DNA of 64,000 bases, from IMG/VR virus record IMGVR_UViG_3300009514_000001, positions 62,001-126,000 of that record; one strand, written 5' to 3'. Positions 527 to 35,525 of the stretch are shown one piece after another. The translations under genes and the position numbers were made by a program. How positions within the stretch are numbered: the first letter of the stretch is position 1; the number at the start of each line of letters is the position of its first letter. The notes under the pieces were generated by a model. The model made no database searches and had not been told where the DNA came from. It saw only the letters and a program-made list of their open reading frames with translations.

Positions 527-909
527 TCAGTCTCCAAAGAGGTCGAGTATGCCGCCCTCGGAGGGCGCTGTAGTCCGTTCATTCAACACGAAGAGCCGGT
601 CCAGCACTCCGTCCTCGAAATTCTGGTCGTGTTCGGTGTAGGGCGGGACGTCTAGGTCACCCCACCCGTAGGCTTTGAGGACCTCTCGGTCCATCTCTTC
701 GTGAAGCTGTTGGAGTTCGGGCAGCTCACCGGCCTTGATGGTGTTGTACAACTTCGTCAGGCCTTTCTGGTTCGAGGCCATCCACTTGGCCCGGGCCGCA
801 TAGAGACGCTGAGAACGGTGGAGCCCTGATGAATTGACCCTTCGTTGGCCTCTAGGGGCAAGGGGTCCGGACGCTCAGGACCTCGACGTAGACGGGAGTT
901 CAACGTCAT
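527..909 (-). pseudogene. Internally deleted, frameshifted paralogue of the MmeI-type TRD gene at 34551-35525
   Basis: ATG 909 reads MTLNSRLRRGPERPDPLPLEANEGSIHQGSTVL, matching the paralogue N-terminus. It then joins out of frame to QRLYAARAKWMASNQKGLTKLYN...GGILDLFGD, matching the paralogue C-terminus. Confidence 0.85.
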
Positions 910-1199
910 GCTGCGTTCCTCTCCGTGTGATGTCCGCCTCGTGGCCAGACCTTGGTCACAGGCTTCCTGCGCTGTCGAGTGTACCTCACCGTCGACCAGG
1001 TGTCAGGCGGGTGGACGACGATGAAGAACCCCAGTTCTCTGGCGATGCTGTGGGCCTGCTCGTCGGCCCCGACACAATCTCCATGGTGGAAGACGGGCTG
1101 TGTGTTGCAGCGCTCTACGATGCGTCTGAGGAGCTTGTAGAGGGTCTGTCGCTGGAGGTCCGTCAGACCATCCCGTGTGCCAGTGAACCCTACGTGCAT
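906..1199 (-). CDS. SLOG/YspA-like protein, probably internally shortened
   Basis: VGFTGTR, HHGDCVGADEQAH and TWSTVRY motifs; HPP runs straight into DTWSTVRY. Confidence 0.6.
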   Translation of the reverse strand: MHVGFTGTRDGLTDLQRQTLYKLLRRIVERCNTQPVFHHGDCVGADEQAHSIARELGFFIVVHPPDTWSTVRYTRQRRKPVTKVWPRGGHHTERNAA

Positions 1200-1876
1200 C
1201 GCCTCGGCGGGACCAAAACCTCGAAGGAGTAGTCCTCCACCCCGAGGTGTTCGAGATAGAGGTCACAGACCCGAGTGAACCCCTTGTGGACAAGAACCCG
1301 CAGACGCTTCACGACCTGCCAGGTGGCTGGGTACTTGGACGCCAGTTGGCGGTCGCTCGAAAAGGGAGCCTTGGGCTTGAAGAAGTCCGGGTGGAGCTTG
1401 AGGGCCTTGACGATCTCTGCGCCCAGGAACTTGAGGGCGTCCTGAGTCTGCTTTGTCGCGGCCACCAGCAAGGAACCGTCCGTCAGAAGGGCTCGTTGCT
1501 CGCAGAGTTGAATGGCCTGGAAGAGGAATGGCTCTTCACTAAACTTGAAGTTTAGAATCTTGCCACCGGGGAGAAGGTTCTCCGTCGGCTTCACAACCTG
1601 GAGCCCGTCCGACGGAGATGTAGAGACCCTCAGCTTGACCGTGCCGTAGAGCAACATCTGTTTGACCAGATGCCCCGAGAGCGTGGTGAACTCCTCGTTG
1701 AACCTGGCCAGGCCCCCTGCCACGGACTTGTCCGGGGACTCCGTCCACTGGTAGCGAGGGCGAGTGGCCAGGTTGAGCTGCAAGGTCAGGGCTCGAAGGC
1801 GGTCAACAGCCTGTCCGAGGATTGGATAGGTCTGGAGGGCCTGGTTGATGTGTTCGACTTGGTCCACAGCTCTCAC
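1190..1876 (-). CDS. Hypothetical protein, 228 aa
   Basis: Protein-like ORF co-oriented with and abutting its neighbours. Confidence 0.7.
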   Translation of the reverse strand: MRAVDQVEHINQALQTYPILGQAVDRLRALTLQLNLATRPRYQWTESPDKSVAGGLARFNEEFTTLSGHLVKQMLLYGTVKLRVSTSPSDGLQVVKPTENLLPGGKILNFKFSEEPFLFQAIQLCEQRALLTDGSLLVAATKQTQDALKFLGAEIVKALKLHPDFFKPKAPFSSDRQLASKYPATWQVVKRLRVLVHKGFTRVCDLYLEHLGVEDYSFEVLVPPRRCT

Positions 1877-2036
1877 CGGATTTCTTGGGACACCACGACG
1901 GCTTCTCCCCTCCTACCTTAGGGTATTTTCCACCAAAGCGTGCACGTTGCGCTGCGTCCTTGTGTCGGCATTGCCCGAAAGCTCTCTTGTGCTGGCCATT
2001 GAACGATACAAAGAAAGAACACTTTGTGCAGGTCAT
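1803..2036 (-). CDS. Small Cys-rich hypothetical protein
   Basis: CTKC...C...PSWCP pattern and ATGA coupling to the upstream stop, but a 74-nt overlap with the next ORF. Confidence 0.45.
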   Translation of the reverse strand: MTCTKCSFFVSFNGQHKRAFGQCRHKDAAQRARFGGKYPKVGGEKPSWCPKKSGESCGPSRTHQPGPPDLSNPRTGC

Positions 2037-3907: not shown

Positions 3908-3910
3908 GGG

Positions 3911-4027: not shown

Positions 4028-4050
4028 AGGGAGGGGAGGGGGGGAACCGA

Positions 4051-19144: not shown

Positions 19145-19647
19145 GAGGACCTCTCGGGACAGGTGGACTTGTCAGCGGCGGCCTTCCGGATTCTCATCGC
19201 GGCTTCGAGCTGGTGTACGTTCCAGTCGTCGAGGCCACAGGTATTCTCCGTGCCGGGATTGTAGAAGAAGCACTGAGGACACTGCGCCGTCCTCCAGGCC
19301 GTCGCTCCCATCGCTCCCATAATACGCATCCTCTCCTCCTTGAGTTGGTCCGTCTCCGGCTGTCCATACACTTGGACCAAACACCCACGATTCGTCAAGA
19401 GGCCCTCAAGACGAGCCGTCTGAGCGGCCGTGAGAACTACCTTCCAAAGGGTGAACCCGCCGTCATGGACCAGGGGAGGCCCGTTGGATACCTCCAAGGC
19501 CGTGGGCTCGCCTCCCGCGACCTGAAAGGTCCATAGACGCTGGCGCTGCTCCCCGTCGGCCATCACCGGCAAACCAGTGAAGGGGTCGGTCACGAACTTG
19601 TTGTCGTTAGACGTCACTAACCACACCGGTGGAGGGATGCCGACCAC
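19141..19647 (-). CDS. Hypothetical protein with Cys cluster
   Basis: CPQC...C...C; ATGA coupling to the methyltransferase. Confidence 0.7.
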   Translation of the reverse strand: MVGIPPPVWLVTSNDNKFVTDPFTGLPVMADGEQRQRLWTFQVAGGEPTALEVSNGPPLVHDGGFTLWKVVLTAAQTARLEGLLTNRGCLVQVYGQPETDQLKEERMRIMGAMGATAWRTAQCPQCFFYNPGTENTCGLDDWNVHQLEAAMRIRKAAADKSTCPERSS

Positions 19648-21678: not shown

Positions 21679-21927
21679 CGTCTTCTCTCGTCTTGTCTAT
21701 CTTCTCATCGAGAACGCGCAGGTGTCTCTCTTGCCTGGCAAGGGACTTCTCCTGGGCCCTGAGGGCACCATTGTGCACCTTACCGAGGGTGGCGCGGATT
21801 CGTTCCACGCGCCTCTCGACGAGACGAGCCCCTCCCTGCACTCAGCGAGGTCACCTGGACACTCGGACGAAGGTCCAATACCCAGAGCGGCCTCCAAGAC
21901 AGCTAGGCGTCTTTGGGTGTCATCCAT
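21650..21927 (-). pseudogene. Small coiled-coil gene frameshifted by a 5-bp duplication
   Basis: ACGAG is doubled at 21819-21828; removing one copy fuses the two overlapping ORFs into a 90-aa ORF, MDDTQRRL...CREGLVERRVERIR... Confidence 0.6.
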
Positions 21928-24900
21928 CCATCAACTCGACGAAACGACCGCGGTCGACCAGGACCGGCTCGGGGAACCATCCGTCAAGGGGTACCCCATC
22001 GGGGGCGAACAGCTCCAACCGGAACCCTTCGGGGTCGTGGGACCCTACGATGGCCTGGGCGATTCTCTCCCCCTCCTCCTCGTCTACCTTCGAGAGTCGG
22101 TACGGGATGACTCGGCTTTCCAGAGAATCCTCCGCGGGTCCCTTTGGGACTCCCTGGGAACCCGAATGGAACATGTCCCAGGCCCTCGCCAGAGCCGCTT
22201 TCTCCTCCTCTGTCAGAGGGTTCTCGCGGTCGTGTCTGCCGCTCTCGAAGTAAGGTTCGAGGGTCGGTGGCCACCTGATGTCCTCGAAGGACCCAAACTT
22301 CCCTTTGACGTCCTCAGAGTTTCCGTAGAACCCACGGACACGACGTAGGAGGGCCCAAATCTGGTCGTCGTCGAGCCCTGGCTGCTGAAGCTCTCTGCGC
22401 AGGCCGACAGCATACCGGAAGGCCGTCATGTTGTGTTTGACCGTCCAGTTCGGACCAAGCTCGACGTCCACAGTAAGGGGGACCGCCCAATTTCTGCCTA
22501 GGATGATCGGGTTGGATACCATCAACCCGGAGAACAAGTCGCAGGCTTCCTCAAGGATGTCATTGCGGATCTCAAACACCAGCTCATCGTGCATGGTGAT
22601 GATCATCCGAACCTTGTCCTGCCACTTTCTCCTGCGGACCTCCTTGTAAATGAGACCCATCGCCAGTTTGGTGATGTCAGCGCTCGACCCCTGAATCGGG
22701 CTGTTCACTGCGTTGCGTTCCGCCTTGGCCCGGATGAACCTCTCTTCGTGCTTGATATCGGGGAGCGGGAACTTGCGCTGGAACGCCGTGATGACGTAGC
22801 CGTGGTCCTTGGCGAACTTACGGGTTCTCTTCCACCACTCTTGGAGGGAGGTATATGCCTTCTTGAACTGGTTGGCGATGCGGTAGGCCTCGTTCTCACC
22901 ACACCCGGTGTTGCGGTGGATGGCCTTCGGCCCACCCCCATACGAGAGGGCGAAGTTGGCGCTGTTGTGGACCACCAGGCCATTGGTCCAGTAGACGTTG
23001 GGTTCCGCAACATGAAGGTCGACGACGTTCGACGTGCCAGCAGGCAGGATGACCCTGACCTTATTTGCCCCTGTCGCGGACTTGTATTCCTTGGCCTCGC
23101 GGAGACGACTCCGCTTCATCGGGTGGCGAAGATAGGCGTAGAGCCCCCAGGCCTGTGAGGCCCGAATGTGTGTCCGCACATACCACCTCTGATAGGTCTT
23201 GTTGAACGTCGGTTCCACACACGGAGTCATACCAAGGGCGTGACACACTGCGACCAACTGACCCGAGAACACGAAGTCCTTGGAGGTCCATGACATGCGG
23301 CCGTCCTCTCCGACCGTCCCATCCGTGTCGACCAGACCGCCGAGGAAAGACCACAAGGCTGTGGGTCCGCGACCCAGAACCCAGTCCGGAATCCGAAGGC
23401 ATCTCTTACCCTCGACTCCTTCGACGAGCCCAAGAGCAGACAGGAAGCGCATCGTGTGACGACTGCCCAAGTAGACCAGCTGGTCCTTTCGAGTCGGCAG
23501 GAATCCCACCTTCTCGCAGGACTCGACGATAATGTCCTGCCAGGTCTTGTAGGGCAGTCCGAGCTGGTCGACCTTGTCGACGTGGCCATGAGTGATTGAC
23601 ACGGAAGTCGACCCCTGCTTCGCCCCGTCGCCAGAGAACATGCCGGCGAAATAGGCCATGTCGGGGGACAATGACACCCCCATCTCAGGCAGGTTCTTGT
23701 AGGGTCGATACCCGACTCTACGCCAGGGTTTCGTCTCCACATAGGGAGTTCCAACGGGTTCTGCGAGGACATCGCCTGTGTCGAGGCCCTGTTCGATAGA
23801 CTTGAACGTCCCATCGGCCAGGAGAAAACGATGCTGAGCGGTACAGGTCAAGAGGCCTCGACGGGAGACCACATGGTAGACCTCTTGCTCCCCTCCCTGG
23901 TAGGTCTCCAAAAGACGCAGCTCATCCTCTTCGCCGTCCTGGCCGGTAAACACCGTCCCAGGATACTTGAGGAACGTGTCGGGCTCCTCCGCGAACTTCA
24001 AGGAGCCGATGCGCCGGAGAGCCCCGCTCATACCGAGGATGCTGTCAGGGTGGACGCACTTGCCCTGTTTCCTCTTTTCTTTCCAGTCCTTACGCCTCTG
24101 AGCGGACTCCCCGAAAATCTGAATGGCGGTCAGAGTGTGGATGTCCCCGATCTTGTCCTCGCCGCATTGGGGGCAGAAGAGGGGAGGGGCTGGGGGTGTG
24201 GTCTTGCCGTCTCCCCGGTCGAACTCCAGGTCACATGCACTGCACCGGAAAAACGCGTCAATCCACTTCTTCTCGCCGGAGAGATTGGCGGCCAAACGCA
24301 ACTCGACGCCACCGAAATCGATAGCGACCATGGTCCACCCAGTGGGAGCCACGATACACTCACGAATCCTCAGCAGTGCCGGAGGCCTATTGGTGTCGTA
24401 GGTCGCAGGCATTGACTGGAGGTTGAACCGGGTCCCCCCTGTCTTCGCCGGCTCCCTCTCTCCCTTCGAGCTGAAACGTCCTGTCGCTGTAGCGAACTGG
24501 CGGAACCCGATCTTGAGAGTGTTGTCGTGGCGGTAGGTGTCCTCGAAGATGGCGTAGAGCTTACCGAGGGCGTTCTGGTTGCCGCGCATCCACTTGATGC
24601 GATTGACGAATGGGTAGTCGTGGATTGAGTTCTCGATGACCTCTTCCAGGACTTCCTTGCCGGTAGCCACCTGGCCACTGGGGGTCTTCTTCAGACCTGG
24701 AACAGCCAGGTCCCACATGAGCGTCCCGAGCTGGGCCGGCGCAAGGACGTCGTAGCTGTCCTTCAGTTCGACGCCCTTGCGCGGGGGTGGTGCTTCCCGA
24801 GCAATCAGCTCGCCGAACTTCGGTGCGTCCAGGACGATGCGGAGACCTCCCTTTCCTGAGTGGTTGGCGACGGACACTTGGCCCGTCTGACACATCTTCA

Positions 24901-26017
24901 GGACGCCGAGGTCCTGTCGCTGGAACCGCTTTTGGAACTTCTTGGCCTCCCCCCGAAACCGGTCGACCATAGCCTGGAAGGTCTCTCCAGTGTCGTCCGT
25001 GACTGCCATCTCTGGGTTGGTCACCTCGATGTACAGGGACATGAGGTAGAACGACAGAGGCGTGATGTCGCGCTCCAGGATGTCGGAGGCCCCTCGATAC
25101 ACCTCCTTAACGGCCTTGTAGAGGTCCCCCTGGCCGAGCTGAATCAACTCAGCCACCTTGGCCAGGTCGATGTGGAGGCGATTGCGCTCCATCCAGCGGA
25201 CACTAGGGAGGCAGAGCTTCTCGACCTTGTGGATGAACCCCTGGCTATGGGGTCGATTTGTGCTCTCGTTCTTGCTTGTCAGAGCAAGGGCCTTCTTCTT
25301 GAGCTTCTCATAGAGCTGGAGAGTGCAGATGGCGTCGGCCGCAGCGTACTCCAAGATGCCTGGGTCGGTGGGGTCCAACTCAGCGAAGTTCAGGTCCTTC
25401 GTCTTGGGCGGGAACAGCTCCTTCAGCTCGATTTGCTTCTTCCCCAGGAGGGCGTCTGACATCACCTTGAGGGTCTTCGCTCGACGGGTGCTGTCATCGA
25501 GGTAGGCCAGGATGAGGACGTCTTCCCAGGAGTCTGGGTTGTCCCACGTGCCGTACGGGAGACCCCCGTTGTAGGTCATCAACTCGCCCTCGAACTTGCA
25601 GTTGAAGACGAGGGGGACTGACCTGTCCTTGCCCTTGCGCTTCATGCCCTCCATCAGTCGACGGACCTCGGCATCGAACTCGTGGAAAGGGACGTTGTGC
25701 TCTGACGGCTCGTCGTTGGGGCAGTGACGGACTGGGATGTAGTAGCCGGTCTTGGTGTTCGGGGACAGACAAAGACCGACGATGTCGCAGTTGGTCTTGT
25801 ACTGCGTCCCTTCTGGAGTCTCCCGAGGGAACACGCGGGTGTCGAGGCCTGTGGTCTCCAGGTCGAGGGCGTAGTAGGGCTTCGACAGACACTCGTCGAT
25901 GACCTCGCGCAGCCTGGCGCCGGTCGTAACCAGCTCCATGCGGACCTTCTTCATCCACGGATGGAGGGCGACCTCAATCTTGGGCTTGTCCAGGAACCCG
26001 GCATCAAACAACGACAT
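21920..26017 (-). CDS. polA: Family A DNA polymerase with 3'-5' exonuclease domain and one intein
   Basis: DLETTG, YAAAD, TATGRFSS, motif A DFGGVELR, motif B K|SANFALSYG, motif C MHDEL. ATG 26017 follows AAGGGG (the ORF track starts at GTG 26023). Confidence 0.95.
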   Translation of the reverse strand: MSLFDAGFLDKPKIEVALHPWMKKVRMELVTTGARLREVIDECLSKPYYALDLETTGLDTRVFPRETPEGTQYKTNCDIVGLCLSPNTKTGYYIPVRHCPNDEPSEHNVPFHEFDAEVRRLMEGMKRKGKDRSVPLVFNCKFEGELMTYNGGLPYGTWDNPDSWEDVLILAYLDDSTRRAKTLKVMSDALLGKKQIELKELFPPKTKDLNFAELDPTDPGILEYAAADAICTLQLYEKLKKKALALTSKNESTNRPHSQGFIHKVEKLCLPSVRWMERNRLHIDLAKVAELIQLGQGDLYKAVKEVYRGASDILERDITPLSFYLMSLYIEVTNPEMAVTDDTGETFQAMVDRFRGEAKKFQKRFQRQDLGVLKMCQTGQVSVANHSGKGGLRIVLDAPKFGELIAREAPPPRKGVELKDSYDVLAPAQLGTLMWDLAVPGLKKTPSGQVATGKEVLEEVIENSIHDYPFVNRIKWMRGNQNALGKLYAIFEDTYRHDNTLKIGFRQFATATGRFSSKGEREPAKTGGTRFNLQSMPATYDTNRPPALLRIRECIVAPTGWTMVAIDFGGVELRLAANLSGEKKWIDAFFRCSACDLEFDRGDGKTTPPAPPLFCPQCGEDKIGDIHTLTAIQIFGESAQRRKDWKEKRKQGKCVHPDSILGMSGALRRIGSLKFAEEPDTFLKYPGTVFTGQDGEEDELRLLETYQGGEQEVYHVVSRRGLLTCTAQHRFLLADGTFKSIEQGLDTGDVLAEPVGTPYVETKPWRRVGYRPYKNLPEMGVSLSPDMAYFAGMFSGDGAKQGSTSVSITHGHVDKVDQLGLPYKTWQDIIVESCEKVGFLPTRKDQLVYLGSRHTMRFLSALGLVEGVEGKRCLRIPDWVLGRGPTALWSFLGGLVDTDGTVGEDGRMSWTSKDFVFSGQLVAVCHALGMTPCVEPTFNKTYQRWYVRTHIRASQAWGLYAYLRHPMKRSRLREAKEYKSATGANKVRVILPAGTSNVVDLHVAEPNVYWTNGLVVHNSANFALSYGGGPKAIHRNTGCGENEAYRIANQFKKAYTSLQEWWKRTRKFAKDHGYVITAFQRKFPLPDIKHEERFIRAKAERNAVNSPIQGSSADITKLAMGLIYKEVRRRKWQDKVRMIITMHDELVFEIRNDILEEACDLFSGLMVSNPIILGRNWAVPLTVDVELGPNWTVKHNMTAFRYAVGLRRELQQPGLDDDQIWALLRRVRGFYGNSEDVKGKFGSFEDIRWPPTLEPYFESGRHDRENPLTEEEKAALARAWDMFHSGSQGVPKGPAEDSLESRVIPYRLSKVDEEEGERIAQAIVGSHDPEGFRLELFAPDGVPLDGWFPEPVLVDRGRFVELMDG
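22964..24058 (-). mobile_element. Intein in polymerase motif B, 365 aa, LAGLIDADG type
   Basis: CVHPD...VVHN|S; FAGMFSGDG and FLGGLVDTDG. Confidence 0.95.
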
Positions 26018-26026
26018 ACACACCCC

Positions 26027-26461
26027 TTACTCTTCCGTATCTTCCTCGAACACGATGACGTAACACCCATCCCGCCAAGCGAGTACGACCAACGTCGCTG
26101 CCCAGGACACCTTCCGGGAACCCGGAGCCTCGTAGCAGTCGAGGAGATTCCTCCCAGGCCGACACGAGGGCTTTCGCATCGCACAGGACTTGTCCTGGAG
26201 GAGGCGACACGCACCCTCCGAGTGCGGAACTCGTCGAGCCAACTCCTCCGGAGGGAGGCCCAACTCGCGCTCCAGAGGCATAGTATGCCCCCGCAGAGCA
26301 TGCTGGAGCAACTCCTCAGACACATCAGGGATGAGATCACCCCAGGGAGTGCCCCTCAGAGGAGCCAGAACGCCCCAGGAGTCCCCGTCGCGAGGGAGGG
26401 GGCGGGCGATGGTCTGGAACCCCCAGGGAAGGTCCAGAGAGAGTCTACTAAGACCCTTCAT
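26027..26461 (-). CDS. Hypothetical protein, 144 aa
   Basis: ATGA overlap at 26458-26461; Cys cluster. Confidence 0.7.
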   Translation of the reverse strand: MKGLSRLSLDLPWGFQTIARPLPRDGDSWGVLAPLRGTPWGDLIPDVSEELLQHALRGHTMPLERELGLPPEELARRVPHSEGACRLLQDKSCAMRKPSCRPGRNLLDCYEAPGSRKVSWAATLVVLAWRDGCYVIVFEEDTEE

Positions 26462-27054
26462 GCAGCCGAAGCCGCTAGGCTGATGACCTGTTCCCTCATC
26501 TCCGCGAGGCGTTGTCGCCCTTCCTTCTCCGACCAAGTCTCTTGACGGACTTCCCAGTTGATGTGGTCGAACCTCTCCCACAAGGAGAGCATTTTCGACA
26601 GGGAGAGATCCTTGCCCTTGGTCTGACTCAGGAGAAGTTTCTCGGTCCGCTTACGGTCCTCCTTGAAAGACCCCTCCTCGGGCACGGCGATGACTGATCT
26701 AGGGTCCTTGGGCTCAGGACGAGGACGGTAGGTTGTCTTCCACCGCGGAAGGTCGTAGCGCTCTTCCAGAATGCCACAGGCCTTCCAGAACTCGACTCCC
26801 TCCTTAGCCTTGACCGTTTCGATGGCGTCACGCTGCTCTCCGCAACCGAAGCAGTAGAAGTGGTTGCTGTCGGGATAGACACGAGCCGAAGGCTTGTTGT
26901 CCATGCCGCTACCATGAAGGTCGCAGCGGAACTGCTGAGGGACGTCGTAGTCCTGCACCTCGTACCCATAGTCGATGAGTACCTGGAGGATGGACACCTT
27001 CTCGTTGATGCGGTCGGCCCTCTCTCGGGCAGCGTTATGGTCGTCGTCACTCAT
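26458..27054 (-). CDS. Stand-alone CHC2 zinc-finger protein (primase zinc-binding domain)
   Basis: CDLH...DNKPS...YCFGCG...DAI; no TOPRIM domain. Confidence 0.85.
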   Translation of the reverse strand: MSDDDHNAARERADRINEKVSILQVLIDYGYEVQDYDVPQQFRCDLHGSGMDNKPSARVYPDSNHFYCFGCGEQRDAIETVKAKEGVEFWKACGILEERYDLPRWKTTYRPRPEPKDPRSVIAVPEEGSFKEDRKRTEKLLLSQTKGKDLSLSKMLSLWERFDHINWEVRQETWSEKEGRQRLAEMREQVISLAASAA

Positions 27055-27679
27055 GGAATAGCTCGTTGTAGCGTTTCAGGAGACGCCCCTTGGCCTCCTT
27101 CCAGGGAAGCGGGACAATGTAGTCCGAGAACCACCCTGTGTGAATGTTGGTGGCGAACAAGCGCCCGTTGACGGGCCGAGGAAGAGGTTGTCCCCCCACT
27201 TCCTCGGGGAGGTCCCACGACTTCACCGGGTCCCTATCCCCGAAGAAGCTGTGAATCTCCAGAACCAAAGCCGCCAGGTCTGCCCACCGTACACTGGGAG
27301 GCATCTCCGGGACATCCGGGTCGAAGGGAATGCCCAGGGCGCTCCATATGGTCTGGGTGGTCTCCCACTCCACGTCGTCGAACCAAGTGATTCCGTCCTG
27401 TCTCATCCTGTGCTTGATGGGCTCTCCGAGGTCCCCCAGGTAGGCCTCGGCGAAGTCATGGGTGAGTCCTTTCCTGGCGTCCTCGGGGGCGCATAGCTGA
27501 CTCACCATGATACTGTGCTGGGCCACGGAGAAAGGCTCCGGGGTATGGCCGTTGTAGCGAGGCTGGGCGGACAGCGAGTGCACGATATCGAGGATGTGAA
27601 CGTCCTCTCGGGCGAGACGGTGGGGGTAGAGGAATCGGCGCTGGTAAGCGGTCTTGAGGCGTGGTTCTTTCTTTCTCAT
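27047..27679 (-). CDS. HD-domain nucleotidase, YfbR/YfdR-like
   Basis: RYNGH...FSVAQHS...LTHDFAEAYLGD; TGATG coupling to the DnaB gene. Confidence 0.85.
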   Translation of the reverse strand: MRKKEPRLKTAYQRRFLYPHRLAREDVHILDIVHSLSAQPRYNGHTPEPFSVAQHSIMVSQLCAPEDARKGLTHDFAEAYLGDLGEPIKHRMRQDGITWFDDVEWETTQTIWSALGIPFDPDVPEMPPSVRWADLAALVLEIHSFFGDRDPVKSWDLPEEVGGQPLPRPVNGRLFATNIHTGWFSDYIVPLPWKEAKGRLLKRYNELFHE

Positions 27680-30552
27680 CAGTCGTCGCTGCTCATGAAA
27701 TCGGTGGATAGTTCCTCGGCCTTGCGCACGGTCTCTTCGGCCTTCTCTGCGTTGGCCAGGGCCTCGAAGTCTACCGGGTCCGTGCAGGTCATGACGCGCC
27801 GACAACGCCAGTCAACGGCTGTGTAGAGAGGTTCGAACTTCTCGTCGTCTCTGGTCTTGATGCACTGGACTAGGAGACGATTGGTCTTCCGAAGGACATC
27901 ATTGATGAACCCGGCCGTGATGACGTCGCTGGAGCGTTCGATCTCGTTGGAGTAACTGAGGTCGTAGGCCTCATAGATGCCCACGCGGCCTCCGTTCTTG
28001 CCCATGTTGGCGCGCTTGAACCCCTCGCGGCTGATCTGGAACAGGGCCACGACGGCGATGCCTTCCCCTCGGTTGAAGTTGTTGGACAGAATCTTGAGAT
28101 CACGGACGACCTCATTGGCCCTGGCTGTCGTACTCGGGTTGTACTGCTTGGGGTCAACCAGGAGGACGTGGTCGACCACAATCATGTTGAACGGGCTCTG
28201 GCGATAGAGCAGCTCTGACTTGGACCGAATGTCGCTGACCCGGAAGCTGTCCTCATCCGGGTTGTACCCCACGAAGTGCATCTTGCCGTAGCCGTTGGCC
28301 GGGTCTTTCAGGTCTGGGAGGACGAACTGGGTGAGGAACTCCTCCTCGTTCGGCGGCAGACACCCATCCCGGAGGAAACGGTAACGAAGCCCCAGGTCAA
28401 CCTCTCCCTGTCTCTGGATGGCCAGACGGAGGCGAGCCTCCCGGAACTTCGGGTGCATCGAGTGCATCGCGATAATGATGCGACGACATTGGTCGTAGGA
28501 CATCTCCAGGGTGAAGTAGCAGGAGCTGTACTTGAACCAGATGGCCTGGTTGTAGACCCAGTTGAAGGCGACGCTGCTGTTGTGGACGATGAACCCATCC
28601 GCGACGAAGTTCTCGGGTCCCGGGACGGACAAATCGTAGGTCATCTCCTCCCCGTCGTAGGTGACCTCATCCACCTGGGTCCACCAGACGTCACCGTCGG
28701 CCTGCCGGAGCAGACCATCGTCCTGGGCCGCCTCTGCGAGACGACGAACCGTGTCCCGGTGAACTGACCGGCGCTCTTTCGCCCAACGCGCATATTGCCA
28801 ACCCCCCTTGCGAGTCTGGGTGCGGACGTCATCACCAAGGTGGGCCAGAAGGGCCGTGGGCATCTTGTCGTCTTCGGTGCGGTCAGGGAGGTGTCCGAGA
28901 GCTTCCTCCACAGCATCCTCCACAGCATCCTCCACAGCATCCTCCTTGCCGAAGATAGTAGACCGCGTAAGGAACCGGCGCTTCGACTCCGTGGTCCGAA
29001 CAGAGACGTTCCAAAAGACTCTCCTCTCCCCCTTGTACATAATCTGTACGGGGGAGAGAGTGGTCACTACCCCGACTCGTTGGAGGAGGAGTTGGATATC
29101 CGAGGCCAACTGACGGCTCTTACTCGTGTAGTAGATGTTGACCTGGTGGCGATCTTGCCGACCCTCACGTCGCCGGAACACGGACCCCACGGACCCGTCC
29201 GTCGACCACAAGGCCGAGAGAAACAGCCACGTCTGGTCGTCGGTCATCGACCACAACTCACCCGGGACGAACTTGTCCTCGGAACCCTTATCCCAGAGAC
29301 CAAGATCCTCAGCCAGGACACGAAGGGGGGAAGTCCATGGATGGTACTTACTTCGGCCAGTGGAAGTACTCAAATCAACCCTGTCCGAACGCTCTCGGAA
29401 ATAAGCATATCGAGCCTTCCCTCCCTCCGGGGCACGCCTATACCCCATCCTGCGAAGACGGGCGATGAAGTCGGAGCGGATGCCTGGATTCGATACGGAT
29501 AGTTGCAGACACTCCCTCAGGCAGCCGTCCCCCAGGAGATATCCGAGACACACCACTTGGTCGTCACTCCACTCAGAGTCCTCGGGGGAAGTGGTCATGT
29601 GCTTGGCCAAACCCACCCAAGAGCCCTTCTGAAGACCATCCGCACGCACCCAACCTCCGGGGGTGAGGAACGGATGGTTCTCCGACACACGGATGGTGTG
29701 GCCTGTCTTGGTTCGCACCTTGAGGATGGGCTTGACTCCGTTCTTCGCCACCCTACTCGTGCGGGTCTCCGCCAGCTTGACAGAGCCCTCGTCGAGGGCA
29801 TGGAGCCGCGCGCAACGACGGCTCTTGTAAAGATCACCTATCGTTTTCAATTCTCCTGTGTAAGTGTCGAATATCTTTACGGAATTCGCGACGCATTTTA
29901 AGTGACCTGTAAAGCCAGCATGGGTCCAGAGCTGCTTCTTGCGGGCACCGCCGAGGGCGACGTCAATCTGCTTGATGCCCATGTACTGGCCGATACCGAA
30001 GTTGGGGTCATCGCGCCGTCGTTTGTAATCCTCCCAGTAGTCTTCGGTGTCCTCAGTGACCTCGCCGTCTGTGCGCATCCCACCTGGTGGGCGACCGATG
30101 AGGGAGGCCTCCCGCTGGAAGTAGGAAATGGCGTCACGAGGGCCCTTGAAGATGCGGTCCTTCCCGTCCTTCCCTGGGAGCTTGAGGCCCTGCATATTGA
30201 TGTGGTTGGCGTTTTGGAGACGCTCCTGGAGCTTGGCCTGGAGTCTCTCCTCTGAGCGTTCGTAGAGGCGGGCTCGGAAGTCGCCCCGGAACAGGGGTCG
30301 GAGCTGTTTGAGAATCTCAAGCTGGTCTACGATGTCGCTCTGCTTCTCCCGACGGAAGTGAGAGGTCAGGGTCGTGACGTCGGGGGCATGGTTGTGGGCA
30401 CGGAAGAACTCTCTAACGTACTCCCAGATGGTCTGGTGCTCTGGGATGAGGAACTCAAGGCCCTCGGCCTGGGTGTCCAGGATGTTGGCCAGGAGGAGAT
30501 CAGGGTCATCGGTATGGTCGACCCTGAACATGGACCGCAACAAAATCTTCAT
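27679..30552 (-). CDS. dnaB: DnaB-like replicative helicase with intein
   Basis: GFTGHLK|SS, YFTLEMS, IVVDH, LFQISR, IERSSDVI. Confidence 0.88.
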   Translation of the reverse strand: MKILLRSMFRVDHTDDPDLLLANILDTQAEGLEFLIPEHQTIWEYVREFFRAHNHAPDVTTLTSHFRREKQSDIVDQLEILKQLRPLFRGDFRARLYERSEERLQAKLQERLQNANHINMQGLKLPGKDGKDRIFKGPRDAISYFQREASLIGRPPGGMRTDGEVTEDTEDYWEDYKRRRDDPNFGIGQYMGIKQIDVALGGARKKQLWTHAGFTGHLKCVANSVKIFDTYTGELKTIGDLYKSRRCARLHALDEGSVKLAETRTSRVAKNGVKPILKVRTKTGHTIRVSENHPFLTPGGWVRADGLQKGSWVGLAKHMTTSPEDSEWSDDQVVCLGYLLGDGCLRECLQLSVSNPGIRSDFIARLRRMGYRRAPEGGKARYAYFRERSDRVDLSTSTGRSKYHPWTSPLRVLAEDLGLWDKGSEDKFVPGELWSMTDDQTWLFLSALWSTDGSVGSVFRRREGRQDRHQVNIYYTSKSRQLASDIQLLLQRVGVVTTLSPVQIMYKGERRVFWNVSVRTTESKRRFLTRSTIFGKEDAVEDAVEDAVEEALGHLPDRTEDDKMPTALLAHLGDDVRTQTRKGGWQYARWAKERRSVHRDTVRRLAEAAQDDGLLRQADGDVWWTQVDEVTYDGEEMTYDLSVPGPENFVADGFIVHNSSVAFNWVYNQAIWFKYSSCYFTLEMSYDQCRRIIIAMHSMHPKFREARLRLAIQRQGEVDLGLRYRFLRDGCLPPNEEEFLTQFVLPDLKDPANGYGKMHFVGYNPDEDSFRVSDIRSKSELLYRQSPFNMIVVDHVLLVDPKQYNPSTTARANEVVRDLKILSNNFNRGEGIAVVALFQISREGFKRANMGKNGGRVGIYEAYDLSYSNEIERSSDVITAGFINDVLRKTNRLLVQCIKTRDDEKFEPLYTAVDWRCRRVMTCTDPVDFEALANAEKAEETVRKAEELSTDFMSSDD
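28579..29895 (-). mobile_element. Intein after the DnaB Walker A lysine, 439 aa, LAGLIDADG type
   Basis: CVANS...IVHN|S; LGYLLGDG and FLSALWSTDG. Confidence 0.95.
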
Positions 30553-30567
30553 GAATGAGGCGCTCCG

Positions 30568-31506
30568 TTAGCTTCCTTGCTTCTTGCTCTTCTTCTTGGC
30601 CTTCTTTTTCTTCCACTCCTTCTCTGGGTCCCGATGAACCCGAAGTGAAGACTTCCGACTCTCTTTCACGAGGCCAGTCTTCGAGGGCAACTCCTGGTCG
30701 AACCCGACGGTCCCTGAGGTGACCGGAGACGGCATGTCGGGGTAGTCGGTCTCGCGGTCGTCACCCAGATCGATTCCGACGTACTCCCACATCTCGATGT
30801 GGTCCATCAGGTGGTCGGAGTAGCACAGATGGCCGGGAGCTAGGGGGGTGTGGGGCTGGTCGAAGAGCCAGGTGGGCTTGCCCTCGTGGAACCGGCTGCT
30901 CAGAGCCTCCCCCAACACCCCGGGCATCTCCTTGTTGTTCGCCGCCTTCATCCCCAGATGGATGATGAGCAGCTCTGGAGGAATCACCAGGTCCTGGAGG
31001 GTGTAGAAGGACATGGAGACCGGAGCGGCGTCCGAATCAAAAATCTCGCCACCCCCCAGAGGAACGGTCGCCAACCAGGCGGTTATCAGGTCAGTGTCGC
31101 TAGCGACCTTGAAAAACCACCGGCTCCCTTTGCGAATGGCGACATGACGGAGGTGCTCTCGGAACACCCTCGTCGGCGCCGTCACCCACACGTTCTTGTC
31201 GGTCAGGTCCCGCAAAGGCGAGGACTCGATGTTGGCGGCCCGACTCAGACCACGCCACCCGGCCTCGACGTTGTCGAGGATGTCCCGTGCGGCCATGCAC
31301 TCACAGCGCATCCGTCCTGGGGGAATGGTGGAGTCGTCTTGAACGAACCCGTGACCGAAACATTGGGGGCAGTTGGGGTCCCCGGGACCCGTGTCGTCGA
31401 CCTTCTCCCGATAGTCAGGGTGGTTGAGTCCTGACGTCTCTGCATCGAAAGCCACTCGACGTCTTTTGTAGTTGGAGCCGTAGCCGTCGTGGTCGTCGTC
31501 CTTCAC
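30568..31506 (-). CDS. DnaC/IstB-like helicase-loader homologue with degenerate ATPase motifs
   Basis: N-terminal CPQC...CEC; ELLIIHLG, SRFHEGKPTWL; lies directly upstream of dnaB. Confidence 0.65.
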   Translation of the reverse strand: MKDDDHDGYGSNYKRRRVAFDAETSGLNHPDYREKVDDTGPGDPNCPQCFGHGFVQDDSTIPPGRMRCECMAARDILDNVEAGWRGLSRAANIESSPLRDLTDKNVWVTAPTRVFREHLRHVAIRKGSRWFFKVASDTDLITAWLATVPLGGGEIFDSDAAPVSMSFYTLQDLVIPPELLIIHLGMKAANNKEMPGVLGEALSSRFHEGKPTWLFDQPHTPLAPGHLCYSDHLMDHIEMWEYVGIDLGDDRETDYPDMPSPVTSGTVGFDQELPSKTGLVKESRKSSLRVHRDPEKEWKKKKAKKKSKKQGS

Positions 31507-34500
31507 TTCTTCCTCCTTGATTTCCGCGCGTCCTCCAGAACGCCCTCGTAGATGGCCTTGAGGTCTCCGTCTGCGCTAATAGTGACTGGCTTGGACTCGC
31601 CCTTGATGCGCCGGCCGAGGACAGCTTCCACCAAATCCATCTTCTTGCGCAAGACCTGATTGACACGCATGTCGATGGAGCCGATGCCGCACAGGTGGAT
31701 GGCATAGACCCGGTCGTGCTGACTGCCGATGCGGACCATCCGCCCCAGGAGCTGGAGGTAGTCACCGGCGCTCCAGGGGGTGTCGTAGCAGATGAGGCCC
31801 TTGGCGGCTTGGAGGTTGATGGCGTCCGATCCCGCCGTCGTAATGACGATGACCTTGGTGTCTGAGTTGGGGTCCTGGAAGAGACGCTGCGCCTCTGCGC
31901 GCCTCTTCGGATTGCTGTCGTGCCCCGTGATACTCACCGCGTAGCGGTTCTTCCGCCGCTCGTCAGTGTTGTTGAGCGCGGGCATGATGAGCTTAACCAT
32001 CTCGGCGAACCGGGTGAACACGATGACCTTCTCATCGGCCAGGTCGCCCTCTGACAAGAGGTCCTTGAGGAGGCTGAACTTCTTGGACTTGCCATCCCTC
32101 CCCAACAGCTCTGGGTGGTTGACAATCTGCTGGAGGCGCGTACACGCCGTGAGGTGGTCGACCTCCTTCTGCTCCATCTCCCCCGTCTCTTTGTCCTGGA
32201 CCCAGAGGAGGCCGGAGAGGGCTTCGCTGTACAGACGAGTCTGGTCGCCGTGCATCGAGAACTTGAGCATCCGGAAGGTCACGTTCGGAAGCTCTGTCGC
32301 GACCTCGTGCTTGGGCCGCCCCAGGAAGAACGGGTCTATCACCCGCCGGAACCTCTCGATGTCCTCGTCCCGGTATCCGATGATGACCGGAATCTGTCGG
32401 CCGCTCTTGGGGAGCTTCTGCAAGCGGGTGATGCAGTAGTCCTTCATGAAAGAGGTCTTCGTCCCAAACAGCGGAGGCATGACGACCTTGTAGATGCCAT
32501 AGCCCTCGATGAGGTTGTTCTTGATGAGAGTCGCTGTCAGACCCCAAACCCAGGCAACCCCTTCCTTTTGGGCCAGGGCCTTGCAGACCTGGTGGATACG
32601 GGCTCTCGGATTCTTGAACGCAGTTGCCTCGTCGTAGACGACGACCCTGAAGTCGAGTTCACCGTGGATTTTAGTAAAGTCTGCCCTCGCCAGGGCATAG
32701 TTCATGACGATGACTGCCGGTCCTTTCTCGGCGAGAAACTCAGCGTATTGCTTCTCCCTCTTCTTCGGATTTCCTCCGGTCATCGCTGTGACGTGCACCC
32801 CTGTGGTGAACTTCTGAAACTCGCCGGCCCACTGGGGGACGGCTGACTTCGTCGTCAGGATGAGCGCCTTCTGGTCTGGGTTGGTCCTCCAGAGGACACA
32901 GAGGGAGGCGATGGTACTGAGCGTGTTGTGGTTGACAACCCCATTTCCGACATAGCAATGAGACGGGTCGTCGACTGTGATGTCGTACACCTCGGCCTCT
33001 CCCCTCTCGATATTCCTCACAGGATCGTAGAACCACTCTCTCTGACGAACCCGACTCAACTCTAGGAGGGAGGGGGAGTCTTGTGGCACTCCCACCTCTA
33101 ACGCAACCCCCAACATGGTATCGAGGAACGAATAGGAGACATTACGGCGCCCTGCCCGGACATGTCCAAGGGTGGTATAGAAAGCATTCCCGAATCTCTT
33201 CGAAGTGCCTCCCCCCTTGTACCCCTGACGTCCACAACGAGCGTAAATCTCCTCCCGCAAGGCCTCCACCTCTGGCTTGAGATGGGGGACTACATCGTGG
33301 TTGGTGTTCTCCTTGTGCTGTGTCAGGGGAAGGATGGCGTCCCGCTTGCGTTGAGAGATGAGACCCACGTGCTCCATGAACACTCGGGCGTCCTCCCCCA
33401 GGATTGTCAGCCTCCAGTAGGTGTGGTCTCGCCCCTTAACCGCCTTCGGAGACCTACGGGACACAACCCCAAACCCCAGAAGGACAATCTGGAGCTGTTT
33501 GGCCAATTTCTCCGAGGCAGAACTGAACTCGATACCGTTCTTGGTAACGTGGCTCTCCGCATCCACTAAAGCCCGTACAAACTGACGCACGCACTCCCGG
33601 TCTGCCCGAAGGACCGACCACGGGATACACTTGTCTTTGGCGACTCCTTTGGGGACACCTATCGCCTCCAGCCACCGAATCAGATAGGTGCTGGCTATGG
33701 GATAATCGTTCCCATGTTTTCGTACGGGATATTTGAACAGAGTGTCAATGAGGTATTCGATGTCCGCACTGGTCTCAGGATTACTAAGGGAGCACTGGCT
33801 GATAGTAAAAAACCTTCCATCCTTGTGGTTAAACCACCCCTCTCCATCCTTGTGGTTAAACCACCCCTCTGCGATCAGATACCCCAGGAACCTGGCCAGC
33901 TCTGGAACCATCTTGAACTGGGTGGGGTACGTTTTCTCCCCATTCCGAGCGACCTCAGAGGGGAGGGACACGGGGACCCTTCCAAACTTGTAAGGGCTCC
34001 GATCAATGCAAAGGTAGTCCCCCTCACGAACCTCTGCGAGCTTAACCCAGACCTCACCTCCGCCACGACGAACCCGGACCGGGTGGACGAGAGACCCTTC
34101 GATCTCAAAGCCGTGATGCGTCTGGACTTTCCGGGTAGGCTTCACACCTCCATGGTAGAACTGTGAGACCTGGAGTTCCTTCCCCCCGACCTGAACGCTC
34201 CAATGATCCACGGGAGCAAAGGTGTCTGGTTTCGTGATCCCTGGGTTGATATCCTCGATAGGGACCAACCCATTCGACCCCGTTCGAATCAGGGTGTCTC
34301 CTCTGGTGCACTTACCTAATCCGGTGTCGTCGCCCAGGATGAACCGCCCCATGGAAGCCATGTGCAGGATGCCGATGACCTGGTAGTCCCGAATCTTGAG
34401 GGGGCGCTCCACCCCATCGAACCCGACGAAGGTCTCCCGGAGGTTCGGCGGCTTCCTCTTGATGGCCAGGCCCTTCTTCTTCCGAATGGCCGAGAGGCGC

Positions 34501-34544
34501 TTGTACCTCTTCTCGGTCGTCGGGTTCATCTTGTACTTGCTCAT
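31503..34544 (-). CDS. SNF2-family helicase with intein
   Basis: DDTGLGK|T, YDEAT, LTATLIKNN, AGSDAINLQAA, WS...Y.Q..GR..RIG. Confidence 0.93.
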   Translation of the reverse strand: MSKYKMNPTTEKRYKRLSAIRKKKGLAIKRKPPNLRETFVGFDGVERPLKIRDYQVIGILHMASMGRFILGDDTGLGKCTRGDTLIRTGSNGLVPIEDINPGITKPDTFAPVDHWSVQVGGKELQVSQFYHGGVKPTRKVQTHHGFEIEGSLVHPVRVRRGGGEVWVKLAEVREGDYLCIDRSPYKFGRVPVSLPSEVARNGEKTYPTQFKMVPELARFLGYLIAEGWFNHKDGEGWFNHKDGRFFTISQCSLSNPETSADIEYLIDTLFKYPVRKHGNDYPIASTYLIRWLEAIGVPKGVAKDKCIPWSVLRADRECVRQFVRALVDAESHVTKNGIEFSSASEKLAKQLQIVLLGFGVVSRRSPKAVKGRDHTYWRLTILGEDARVFMEHVGLISQRKRDAILPLTQHKENTNHDVVPHLKPEVEALREEIYARCGRQGYKGGGTSKRFGNAFYTTLGHVRAGRRNVSYSFLDTMLGVALEVGVPQDSPSLLELSRVRQREWFYDPVRNIERGEAEVYDITVDDPSHCYVGNGVVNHNTLSTIASLCVLWRTNPDQKALILTTKSAVPQWAGEFQKFTTGVHVTAMTGGNPKKREKQYAEFLAEKGPAVIVMNYALARADFTKIHGELDFRVVVYDEATAFKNPRARIHQVCKALAQKEGVAWVWGLTATLIKNNLIEGYGIYKVVMPPLFGTKTSFMKDYCITRLQKLPKSGRQIPVIIGYRDEDIERFRRVIDPFFLGRPKHEVATELPNVTFRMLKFSMHGDQTRLYSEALSGLLWVQDKETGEMEQKEVDHLTACTRLQQIVNHPELLGRDGKSKKFSLLKDLLSEGDLADEKVIVFTRFAEMVKLIMPALNNTDERRKNRYAVSITGHDSNPKRRAEAQRLFQDPNSDTKVIVITTAGSDAINLQAAKGLICYDTPWSAGDYLQLLGRMVRIGSQHDRVYAIHLCGIGSIDMRVNQVLRKKMDLVEAVLGRRIKGESKPVTISADGDLKAIYEGVLEDARKSRRKK
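32925..34310 (-). mobile_element. Intein after the SNF2 motif I lysine, 462 aa, LAGLIDADG type
   Basis: CTRGD...VNHN|T; FLGYLIAEG and FVRALVDAES. Confidence 0.95.
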
Positions 34545-34550
34545 CGTCTT

Positions 34551-35525
34551 CTAGTCTCCAAAGAGGTCGAGGATACCGCCCTCAGAGGGCGCTGTGGAGC
34601 GCTCTTCGTTCAAGACGAACAACCGGTCGAGGAGTTCGTCCTCGAAGTCCTGGTCGTGTCCAGCATAGTTCGGGACGTCAAGGTCGCTCCATCCGTAGCT
34701 TCTGAGGACCTCTCGGTCCATCTCTTCGTGGAGCTGTTGAAGTTCGGGTAGCTCACCGGCCTTGATAGCGTTGTAGAGCTTCGTCAGGCCTTTCTGGTTC
34801 TCGGTCATCCACTCGGCTCGGGCGGCATAGAGCCGCTGTCCGATGCCTTCCAGAGAGAGGACGACCTCTTTGGGGTCCTTTTGGGGAAAGGGGAACGTCT
34901 CAAAACACGTCTCCGCCGTATAGCGGGAAGTTCCTTGAAGAGAAGAGCCCATGATGCGAGCCCAGTACTCGTGAACTCTAGACTGGAGAACTGAAAACGC
35001 AGTCCAGGACTCCAGAGGGAACACGTAGAGTGCTTCAGAGAACACTCGTCCCGTCGGCTGGAAGGAGAACATCACATGCTTCGACACCCGACCCGTCACC
35101 AAACAACGATGGAAGGGGGCGAGGGAACGATAGAGCCCGGGACGTGGGTCTGAGTACTGCCACCAACGCTTGCAGCGAGCGTTTGTCCTCTCCCTTTCTG
35201 GTTTGACCAGCCTGCGAACCCTCTCAAGCAGGTCGGGCCACTGTTCGGCATCCTCCAATGACATCTGGTCGAAATTGATGACGTATCGGTAGAAATCTTG
35301 GGTAGGAGAGGAGTTGACCTCCTTCCCGCCGATGTAGGGGAAAATCCTTTCTCCGTTCTTCGGGTCCTTGTCGATGAGGGCATTTCGCTCCCTTGGGGTC
35401 AATGTGAACCCGTCCACATTCAGGACGAAGGAGCCGTTGAAACTCAGACCCTCATTGGCCTTGAGAGGCAACGGGTCTGGACGCTCCGGACGCTGACGTA
35501 GACGAGAGTTCAGGCCCGGGCTCAT
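34551..35525 (-). CDS. Stand-alone MmeI/Type IIL-like target-recognition and C-terminal domain protein
   Basis: PYIGGKEVNSSP...RYVINF...WWQY...VSKH..F...LQSRVHE.WA...SS....RYT...CFETFPFP...GLTKLYN; no methyltransferase or nuclease motifs. Confidence 0.85.
   Translation of the reverse strand: MSPGLNSRLRQRPERPDPLPLKANEGLSFNGSFVLNVDGFTLTPRERNALIDKDPKNGERIFPYIGGKEVNSSPTQDFYRYVINFDQMSLEDAEQWPDLLERVRRLVKPERERTNARCKRWWQYSDPRPGLYRSLAPFHRCLVTGRVSKHVMFSFQPTGRVFSEALYVFPLESWTAFSVLQSRVHEYWARIMGSSLQGTSRYTAETCFETFPFPQKDPKEVVLSLEGIGQRLYAARAEWMTENQKGLTKLYNAIKAGELPELQQLHEEMDREVLRSYGWSDLDVPNYAGHDQDFEDELLDRLFVLNEERSTAPSEGGILDLFGD

Follow-up and report, generated by a model that had tools for sequence, protein, structure and literature searches.

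Why would a huge phage place the same eight-residue peptide at the carboxyl terminus of its DNA methyltransferase (MTase) and of fragments of a defence-system methyltransferase? The peptide, GILDLFGD, resembles a docking motif for the sliding clamp, which would couple DNA methylation to replication, although clamp binding is inferred from sequence alone. The locus lies in a window of 64,000 nucleotides, positions 62001-126000 of the 222,005-bp contig IMGVR_UViG_3300009514_000001, for which no public sequencing run was listed. Megablast of 20 kb against GenBank phages returned no match. All features described below are on the minus strand of the window.

The first step is to ask whether the shared tail is real. 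A preliminary description, made from the sequence alone, reported three genes ending in GILDLFGD-stop, and this observation is confirmed. A six-frame search finds the octapeptide exactly three times in the window, each time followed directly by a stop: at 18341-18364 (stop 18338-18340), 34554-34577 (stop 34551-34553), and 530-553 (stop 527-529). A fourth, decayed copy, frameshifted and followed by 14 further residues, lies about 2.4 kb upstream of the window on the same contig. The preliminary description also held that the MTase is otherwise unrelated to the other two proteins and encodes the tag with synonymous codon differences. Both claims hold: BLASTP of the MTase against the second protein aligns only the eight tail residues, and five of the eight codons differ, at third positions, between the two genes.

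The first protein (18338..19144, 268 aa) is a beta-class N6/N4 DNA methyltransferase of the CcrM/MboIIA type. Pfam assigns residues 25-239 to N6_N4_Mtase (PF01555, profile positions 1-216 of 221, E 2e-35), and the family profile hits CcrM (6pbd, E 1e-24) and MboIIA (1g60), the match covering nearly the whole length of the protein. The catalytic domain is complete, with D31, the D-P-F-x-G-S-G block, and other invariant columns of the family alignment. The second protein (34551..35525, 324 aa) is a stand-alone target-recognition module (TRD) plus C-terminal domain of a DrmMI/MmeI-type methyltransferase, without a catalytic domain. Residues 31-215 match MmeI_TRD (PF20466, E 7e-16); the PADLOC model for the DISARM methyltransferase DrmMI (PDLC02643) matches at E 8e-90 over profile positions 997-1315 of 1347; and the family profile hits MmeI (5hr4) residues 651-883. 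The protein is 50-58% identical to the C-terminal third of these enzymes. The third ORF (527..781; 84 aa from the first ATG, or 115 aa stop to stop, reaching 874) is 84% identical to residues 230-324 of the TRD protein. It is preceded by a 50-aa out-of-frame ORF (757..909, MTLNSRLRRGPERP...) that encodes a TRD N-terminus: tblastn with residues 12-42 of the TRDs from another phage contig, L046, matches 903-811 in a different frame from the C-terminal piece. The earlier label of a deleted paralogue is therefore correct.

The genomic setting of the MTase gene is a replication module (19141..27054), which the MTase gene follows directly. This module encodes a primase Zn-ribbon protein (26458-27054), a 184-aa protein, an intein-containing PolA (21920-26023), and proteins of 321, 367, and 168 aa; Pfam identified the recognizable members, and synteny and tblastn established conservation of the module with related huge phages. 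A DnaB-type helicase with an intein follows in coordinate order at 27679..30552 (Pfam DnaB, DnaB_C, Intein_splicing, and LAGLIDADG_3). The TRD gene, in contrast, lies 16 kb from the MTase gene. Its start codon is overlapped by 4 nt (ATGA) by the stop of a gene (35522..36088) for a 188-aa protein without Pfam, PHROG, or PADLOC match. An intein-containing SNF2-family helicase (31503..34544; SNF2-rel_dom, Helicase_C, LAGLIDADG_3, and Intein_splicing) starts 6 nt after the TRD stop; its best PADLOC models are DpdE/ZorD rather than DrmD. The DISARM genes drmA, drmB (MZB/DUF1998), and drmC/drmD, present next to cellular homologues at two loci (L050 and L053), are absent here.

Is the tail conserved in related phages, and is it free of the folded domain? 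Both points had been named beforehand as ways to overturn the docking idea. Of the 85 closest MTase homologues, 65 carry [IV][LF][DS][LMF][FL] in their last 16 residues, with consensus GGILDLFGD, after a linker that varies in length and sequence; one homologue has exactly GGILDLFGD. Among 68 tailed homologues, position 1 is I (52), V (13), or L (3). Family counts at the following positions are L41/F20 at position 2, D53/S11 at position 3, L31/M15/F15 at position 4, and F49/L16 at position 5, and 0-3 residues follow the core in most. The two genomic contexts examined (L027, and L029 on a 618,736-bp contig) are syntenic huge-phage replication modules that share the order primase, PolA, MTase with the window. 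In AlphaFold2 models of both proteins the folded domains have pLDDT mostly above 90, and each tail follows a low-confidence stretch beyond the last helix, so it is not modelled as part of the fold. In the MTase model (mean pLDDT 87.5), the linker (residues 246-260, 18365..18409) has pLDDT of about 51-79 by block, falling below 50 at residues 250-256, and precedes a tail of about 78. From these confidence scores, without coordinates, docking of the tail back onto its own domain cannot be excluded. In the TRD model (mean pLDDT 90.6), the last helix (292-311) and a short linker of five residues (34578-34592) precede the tail; pLDDT averages 68 over residues 311-320 and 52 over the last four. Both tails show a short helix.

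What, then, does the tail resemble? Positions 2-5 (L-D-L-F) match the bacterial beta-clamp-binding consensus QL[SD]LF (QLxLxL in another form), found in Pol II, Pol IV, UmuC, Hda, and the phage Mu proteins MuC and Mor: short hydrophobic-acidic peptides at a terminus on a flexible linker, carried by unrelated DNA-acting proteins. The tail differs in having Ile or Val instead of the canonical Gln at position 1, as the preliminary description recognized, and in its conserved Gly-Gly prefix and Gly-Asp suffix. However, MuC and Mor are reported to use QHDLF, QPDLF, or only DLF to bind DnaN, functional motifs with only DLF being reported for Mor (PMC12867686). Moreover, more distant relatives of the same MTase family carry canonical motifs at the same position (QASLF, QRSLF, QLRLF): among 150 representatives, 14 have Qxx[LM]F or QLxLx[LFM] starting in the last 12 residues, against 0.86 expected from the internal rate. 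The two checked sit on short, phage-like contigs (8.3 and 19.7 kb) with small genes, a PDDEXK nuclease, AAA_24 and HNH proteins, and no polymerase in the stretch shown.

The TRD homologues point the same way. Of 119 DrmMI-type homologues, 21 end in Qxx[LM]F after a Lys/Arg-rich linker, against 0.16 expected; the ending in cellular homologues is QGxLF, and one protein ends GQGGLFGDEG. Two that were checked lie in DISARM class-1 loci. None of the 119 has the GILDLFGD tail; only this phage has swapped the Lys-rich linker and QGxLF ending for a five-residue linker and the phage MTase tail.

A second precedent is provided by phage T4. The C-termini of gp43 (...EKASLDFLFG), gp55 (...SPSLDFLYEAND), and gp33 are interchangeable hydrophobic-acidic peptides on divergent linkers that bind the gp45 clamp (PMC2988020, PMC6212786). 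Here too, several unrelated proteins of one phage share a near-identical C-terminal peptide, and the LD..LF[G/D] flavour is similar. The T4 core LDFLF (...SLDFLFG in gp43, ...SLDFLYEAND in gp55, EGLDFLFD in a ligase loop) is one residue longer than LDLF but of the same character. T4 encodes its own clamp and clamp loader; none was recognized in the 92 kb of the 222-kb contig examined. The T4 clients are polymerase and transcription factors, whereas those described here are modification proteins. In eukaryotes, the maintenance methyltransferase DNMT1 is brought to replication forks through a clamp-binding peptide; that peptide is a PIP box at the N-terminus of an unrelated C5-MTase, so the analogy is one of logic only. 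No report of DNA methyltransferases as clamp clients in bacteria or phages was found within the body of literature searched.

These observations suggest a model, somewhat more likely than not, in which GILDLFGD is a C-terminal short linear docking motif held on a flexible linker, native to a family of phage orphan beta-class MTases. In this view it tethers the MTase to a sliding clamp left on replicating DNA, more likely the DnaN of an as yet unidentified host than a still unrecognized phage clamp, so that new phage DNA would be methylated as it is made. The DrmMI-derived proteins, having acquired the same tail, would go to the same hub. The analysis itself establishes the identity, conservation, position, and modelled flexibility of the tail, the family assignments, and the canonical clamp-type motifs at the same position in relatives. 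Binding to a clamp, methylation coupled to replication, and any role of the TRD proteins are inferences; those proteins could be a specificity subunit for an MmeI-type catalytic half encoded elsewhere, or could interfere with DISARM. Against the model stand the missing Gln and the replisome, a T7-like PolA/DnaB/primase type that does not normally use a clamp. It also counts against the model that no clamp gene of the DnaN or gp45 type was recognized in the window or in contig positions 41.8-134 kb, where Pfam, PHROGs, or precomputed Pfam assignments covered essentially all genes. PDB sequence searches and ESM Atlas, applied to the conserved 367-, 321-, and 374-aa proteins, were negative, as was a homologue profile of the 367-aa protein against PDB.

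The preliminary description had gone further, proposing a clamp-tethered split modification system, and its interpretation is only partly supported: the evidence favours a selected docking peptide rather than a DNA-level copy, but not a partnership between the beta-class MTase and the TRD protein. If the tail does bind a clamp, phage and defence-system methyltransferases would be coupled to the replication fork, a prokaryotic counterpart of DNMT1-PCNA. This would help explain how phage DNA is fully protected before restriction enzymes see it and how DISARM marks self DNA, and would provide a simple sequence signature for such enzymes along with a handle (LF-to-AA) for testing them. A broader and more tentative possibility, less likely than not, is that clamp tethering is a widespread, unreported feature of prokaryotic DNA methyltransferases. 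Phage orphan beta-class MTases (with Q-type tails on short phage-like contigs and the GGILDLFGD variant in a huge-phage clade) and DrmMI (with its Lys-rich linker and QGxLF) would all ride the clamp to methylate DNA as it is replicated. This phage would then have retargeted a captured DrmMI recognition module to the same hub, possibly to interfere with DISARM; the grafted tail points to a possible counter-defence strategy.

Of the alternatives, the one that survives best, though it is unlikely, is that the tail docks on a hub other than a sliding clamp: for example the PolA, the DnaB helicase, an SSB, or one of the conserved unknown proteins of the replication module. The failure to recognize a clamp gene in the sequence examined is consistent with this, as is the T7-like replisome, since in T7 acidic C-terminal tails of partner proteins bind the polymerase itself. 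The phage-type tail is also confined to the huge-phage subfamily, as expected for a clade-specific partner. PolA orthologues keep a hydrophobic-acidic N-terminus (MSLFDAGFLD, MNFLEELE, MNFLDELE); PolA of this phage does begin (V-C-)MSLFDAGFLD, the weaker look-alike noted in the preliminary description. However, positions 2-5 follow the beta-clamp consensus closely, including the D/S preference at position 3, and relatives carry the Q-type motifs at the same position. Furthermore, T7- and SSB-type tails end in Phe, which is not required to be the last residue here.

A sorting or turnover signal is very unlikely. Such a tail could be a capsid-packaging peptide, by which DNA-protecting proteins are injected with the genome, or a protease degron. 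Some phages package anti-restriction proteins, for example the P1 Dar system; encapsulin cargo peptides are likewise short C-terminal Gly/hydrophobic peptides on flexible linkers; and all carriers found here are DNA-modification-related proteins. No similarity to a known packaging or degron motif supports this reading, which also does not explain the canonical Qxx[LM]F motifs at the same position in relatives on short phage-like contigs and in chromosomal DISARM DrmMI.

Also very unlikely is the split enzyme of the preliminary description, in which the beta-class MTase and the free TRD are two halves brought together on a common hub. Both carry the identical tail in the same genome, and split MmeI-type systems with free TRD subunits do exist in other phage contigs: L046, with one catalytic gene plus three tandem TRD genes, and L051. 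Their stand-alone TRDs, of about 330 aa, start at the same ...NSRL... junction as the protein here, which begins at the MTase-TRD junction. However, MmeI-type TRDs pair with gamma-class MmeI/DrmMI catalytic domains, and in those loci the partner is a gamma-class MmeI_Mtase encoded directly upstream, not a PF01555 enzyme, and the TRDs lack the tail; here the upstream gene encodes the unrelated 188-aa protein. Also against the split enzyme, the MTase matches CcrM and MboIIA over nearly its whole length, and the two genes lie 16 kb apart. No such catalytic gene was found by tblastn with three MmeI_Mtase halves in contig positions 41.8-134 kb, and a pattern scan of the viral contig collection did not return this contig. 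In the two related phage loci examined, L027 and L029, no TRD gene lies within about 10 kb of the MTase orthologue. Coincidence, or a recent DNA copy without function, is effectively refuted by the identical octapeptide at three C-termini, with five of eight codons different between the MTase and TRD genes, and by its conservation across the MTase family, and has nothing in its favour beyond the short length of the peptide.

A relaxed tail search in the window proteins found four carriers against 0.86 expected; the fourth (EILDALNQAPE) lies in a SAP/Rho_N-like helix and is probably chance. No Q-type motif was found at the termini of other window proteins. In IMG/VR, the exact tag sits at a true C-terminus only on this contig: one match (contig L007) is antisense to a tape-measure gene, and in two others (L013 and L021) it lies 12 residues from the end of a 290-aa protein that looks by eye like a PAPS-reductase-family protein. 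GTDB genomes yielded only antisense or spurious ORFs. Among all matches inspected in these collections and in JGI metagenomes, those other than MTase orthologues and one family of small proteins were internal, antisense, or in very short ORFs. The small proteins, from JGI metagenomes, where MTase orthologues were also matched, end in NGILDFFGD. They could not be shown to be gp33 homologues, and cyanophage S-RSM4 gp55 has no such tail. They lie on four contigs, and the only one whose neighbours were inspected (L036) carries gp46- and gp47-like genes.

A six-frame search of the window finds GILDLFGD three times, always on the minus strand and always followed by a stop codon: at 18341-18364, 34554-34577, and 530-553. 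The first protein (18338-19144, 268 aa) is a complete beta-class N6/N4 DNA methyltransferase (MTase; PF01555, residues 25-239, E 2e-35). The second (34551-35525, 324 aa) carries an MmeI target-recognition domain (TRD; PF20466, residues 31-215). The third (527-781) is 84% identical to residues 230-324 of the second, and is preceded by a short out-of-frame ORF (757-909) that encodes a TRD N-terminus; it is therefore an internally deleted paralogue. BLASTP of the MTase against the TRD protein aligns only the eight tail residues, and five of the eight tail codons differ at the third position. The preliminary description, of one C-terminal peptide shared by an MTase, a stand-alone TRD protein, and its deleted paralogue, is accurate.

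The window is positions 62001-126000 of a 222,005-bp IMG/VR contig, and a fourth, frameshifted copy of the TRD C-terminus with the tail lies about 2.4 kb upstream of it. Just upstream of the window (contig about 59,660-60,730; positions 9786-10852 of locus L002), a TRD copy has its central part (residues about 38-253) on the plus strand (10001-10648), whereas its N-terminal piece (10724-10644) and its C-terminal piece (9949-9786, with the tail) are on the minus strand. This is an in-place inversion of the TRD core, which could represent a programmed inversion, a decayed copy, or an assembly artefact. Three 66-nt tandem repeats that encode the TRD N-terminus lie at 10667-10852.

All genes in the window run on the minus strand, and G+C is 61%. 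The tagged genes sit in or next to a T7-like replication module: a primase Zn-ribbon protein; PolA (21920-26023); DnaB (27679-30552); an SNF2 helicase (31503-34544); and a UvrD-like helicase (7123-14358, 2411 aa). The last four carry inteins with LAGLIDADG homing endonuclease domains, and the UvrD-like helicase has three matches to the intein splicing domain. Giant ORFs of 1942, 3789, 1029, and 1228 aa follow. Further upstream, the contig encodes the type I-C CRISPR-Cas proteins Cas8c/Csd1 (cut by the end of the locus examined) and Cas7 (contig positions about 41,809-43,613; locus L048, 1-1805). Megablast finds no relative in GenBank phages. This is an uncultivated huge phage, and no public sequencing runs were listed.

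The tail is native to the MTase family. Of the 85 closest homologues (E below about 1e-59, mostly 260-310 aa), 65 have [IV][LF][DS][LMF][FL] within their last 16 residues. The consensus is (T)GG-I-L-D-L-F-G-D, and in most 0-3 residues follow the core; one homologue, P0150, ends in exactly GGILDLFGD. The stretch between the catalytic domain and the tail varies in length and sequence. Two genomic contexts were examined, L027/L028 and L029, the latter on a 618,736-bp contig. Both share the gene order of the window: primase, a small protein, PolA, proteins of about 340 and 360 aa, and then (after three to six small genes) the MTase. The proteins match by tblastn. Absence of the tail from homologues in related phages, which the preliminary description had set out as a refutation of its own interpretation, is therefore not observed. 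Both related huge phages also encode a peptide-chain release factor (PCRF/RF-1 domains) near the MTase (L027, 12757-13287; L029, 14472-15125). The AlphaFold2 model of the MTase has a confident core (pLDDT above 90), a linker of about 51-79 (below 50 at residues 250-256), and a short helical tail at about 78. The closest solved relatives are CcrM (6pbd) and MboIIA (1g60), both matched over nearly the whole protein.

More distant relatives carry canonical clamp motifs at the same position. An exhaustive HMMER search over 50%-identity representatives returned 150 best hits, among which the phage-type tail is confined to the nearest clusters. However, 14 of the 150 end in Qxx[LM]F or QLxLx[LFM] starting in the last 12 residues, whereas only 0.86 would be expected from the rate of the same patterns inside these proteins. 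Examples are PQASLF, AQRSLF(G), GQLRLFGA, PQLGLTL, and QQMEMFA. Two of the 14 were checked for context. Both lie on short contigs (8.3 and 19.7 kb) among small genes with a PDDEXK nuclease, an AAA_24 protein, and HNH endonucleases, and no polymerase gene appears in the stretch inspected. This gene content is what would be expected of a small phage or prophage that depends on the host replisome. These are textbook beta-clamp-binding motifs (consensus QL[SD]LF; PMC12867686). The huge-phage tail ILDLF differs from the consensus QLDLF only at position 1, and the preference of the family for D or S at position 3, L or M at position 4, and F or L at position 5 mirrors the consensus. Phage Mu Mor is reported to work with only the DLF part of the motif (PMC12867686), so the missing Gln is not disqualifying.

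The TRD protein is a captured piece of the DISARM methyltransferase. PADLOC assigns it to DrmMI at E 8e-90, covering profile positions 997-1315 of 1347, and a family profile hits MmeI (5hr4) residues 651-883. Homologues at 50-58% identity are abundant. The two cellular contexts that were checked (loci L050 and L053) are class-1 DISARM loci, with a DrmD SNF2 helicase, the MmeI-type MTase, a PLD protein, a DrmA helicase, and DrmB/MZB. These cellular proteins (among them P0004-P0120 of our set) usually continue past the last conserved helix (...DRLFxLN...) into a Lys/Arg-rich stretch of 25-150 residues. Of 119 homologues, 21 then end in Qxx[LM]F, nearly always QGxLF-stop, against 0.16 expected; others have QSELF, QLDFL, QLSF, or QLEL-type endings near the C-terminus, and one ends GQGGLFGDEG, close to the GILDLFGD of the phage. 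We found no report of this clamp-binding-like ending. None of the 119 has the phage-type tail. So this phage replaced the DrmMI linker and Q-type ending with a five-residue linker and the tail of its own MTase. In the AlphaFold2 model, pLDDT is mostly above 90 up to the last helix (292-311), and then falls to 68 for residues 311-320 and 52 for the last four. The tail is not modelled as part of the fold.

Stand-alone TRD proteins of this type do occur in other phage-like contigs, where the gene directly upstream encodes the gamma-class MmeI-type catalytic half. For example, L046, a 327,776-bp metagenome contig, has one 300-aa catalytic gene followed by three overlapping TRD genes (332, 332, and 330 aa; 8125-11979), which looks like a split, multi-specificity methyltransferase. 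A second contig, L051, has a 225-aa catalytic gene followed by one TRD gene. In the present phage, the upstream gene instead encodes an unrelated 188-aa protein whose stop overlaps the TRD start, and the downstream gene, 6 nt away, is the SNF2 helicase. A tblastn search with three catalytic halves finds nothing in contig positions 41.8-134 kb, and a pattern scan of the viral contig collection with a catalytic-domain alignment did not return this contig. Moreover, the beta-class MTase matches complete beta-class enzymes end to end, and in the two related phage loci examined no TRD gene lies within about 10 kb of its orthologue. Nothing suggests that it borrows an MmeI-type TRD. The TRD proteins could provide a specificity subunit for a catalytic half encoded in the 130 kb of the contig outside the stretch read, or could act as a sequence-specific DNA binder or DISARM decoy, although this second option is inference only.

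The closest functional precedent is the T4 family, in which gp43, gp55, and gp33 share highly similar, interchangeable hydrophobic-acidic C-termini on divergent linkers, and the DNA ligase carries the same motif in an internal loop. All bind the gp45 clamp (PMC2988020, PMC6212786). In the T4 record, gp43 ends ...EKASLDFLFG and gp55 ends ...SPSLDFLYEAND. A family of acidic proteins of about 113 aa ending NGILDFFGD-stop was found in four metagenome contigs (L036, 1109-1450; L039; L044; and L034). In L036, the only one whose neighbours were inspected, the gene lies downstream of gp47- and gp46-like, peptide deformylase-like, and MazG-like genes. These proteins could not be shown to be gp33 homologues, and remain a lead. 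In the literature library searched, we found no paper that links bacterial or phage DNA methyltransferases, MmeI, or DrmMI to a sliding clamp.

Together, the analysis shows that the shared tail is real, far beyond chance, and conserved in a phage MTase family, and that in this phage it has been grafted onto DISARM-derived recognition modules; that it is a docking peptide bound by a clamp is inferred from sequence and models alone. The clamp reading is the best supported, and on present evidence is somewhat more likely than not. It rests on the motif match and on canonical clamp motifs at the same position in two unrelated MTase families. However, no clamp or clamp-loader gene was recognised in the 92 kb examined, the conserved unknown proteins next to the MTase gave no structural lead, and T7-type replisomes do not normally use clamps. 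A docking peptide for a different hub therefore remains a serious rival, as does, less seriously, a sorting or turnover signal. The interpretation offered in the preliminary description, a clamp-tethered split modification system, is partly supported: its claim that the MTase and the TRD form one split enzyme is not supported.

Three further proteins of this phage end in tail-like peptides: a 660-aa protein (L048, 12957-14939), ...DELMDLLGI; a 246-aa protein (L048, 16410-17150), ...TVETLFGIAG; and a 395-aa protein with a Ros/MucR domain (window 62062-63249), ...THPGLFGRDS. Of these, the first fits the relaxed phage-type pattern. PolA orthologues (window 26017-26023; L027, 2188; L029, 36) keep a hydrophobic-acidic N-terminus (MSLFDAGFLD, MNFLEELE, MNFLDELE), which may be another docking peptide. 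In L027 and L029, the protein after PolA ends ...SILDALADD or ...DLLDALAED. Finally, the 312-aa protein encoded between SNF2 and DnaB (window 30568-31506) ends in a Lys-rich tail (...KKKKAKKKSKKQGS), and DnaB itself (27679-30552) ends in an acidic tail with Phe (...STDFMSSDD), reminiscent of T7 gp4.
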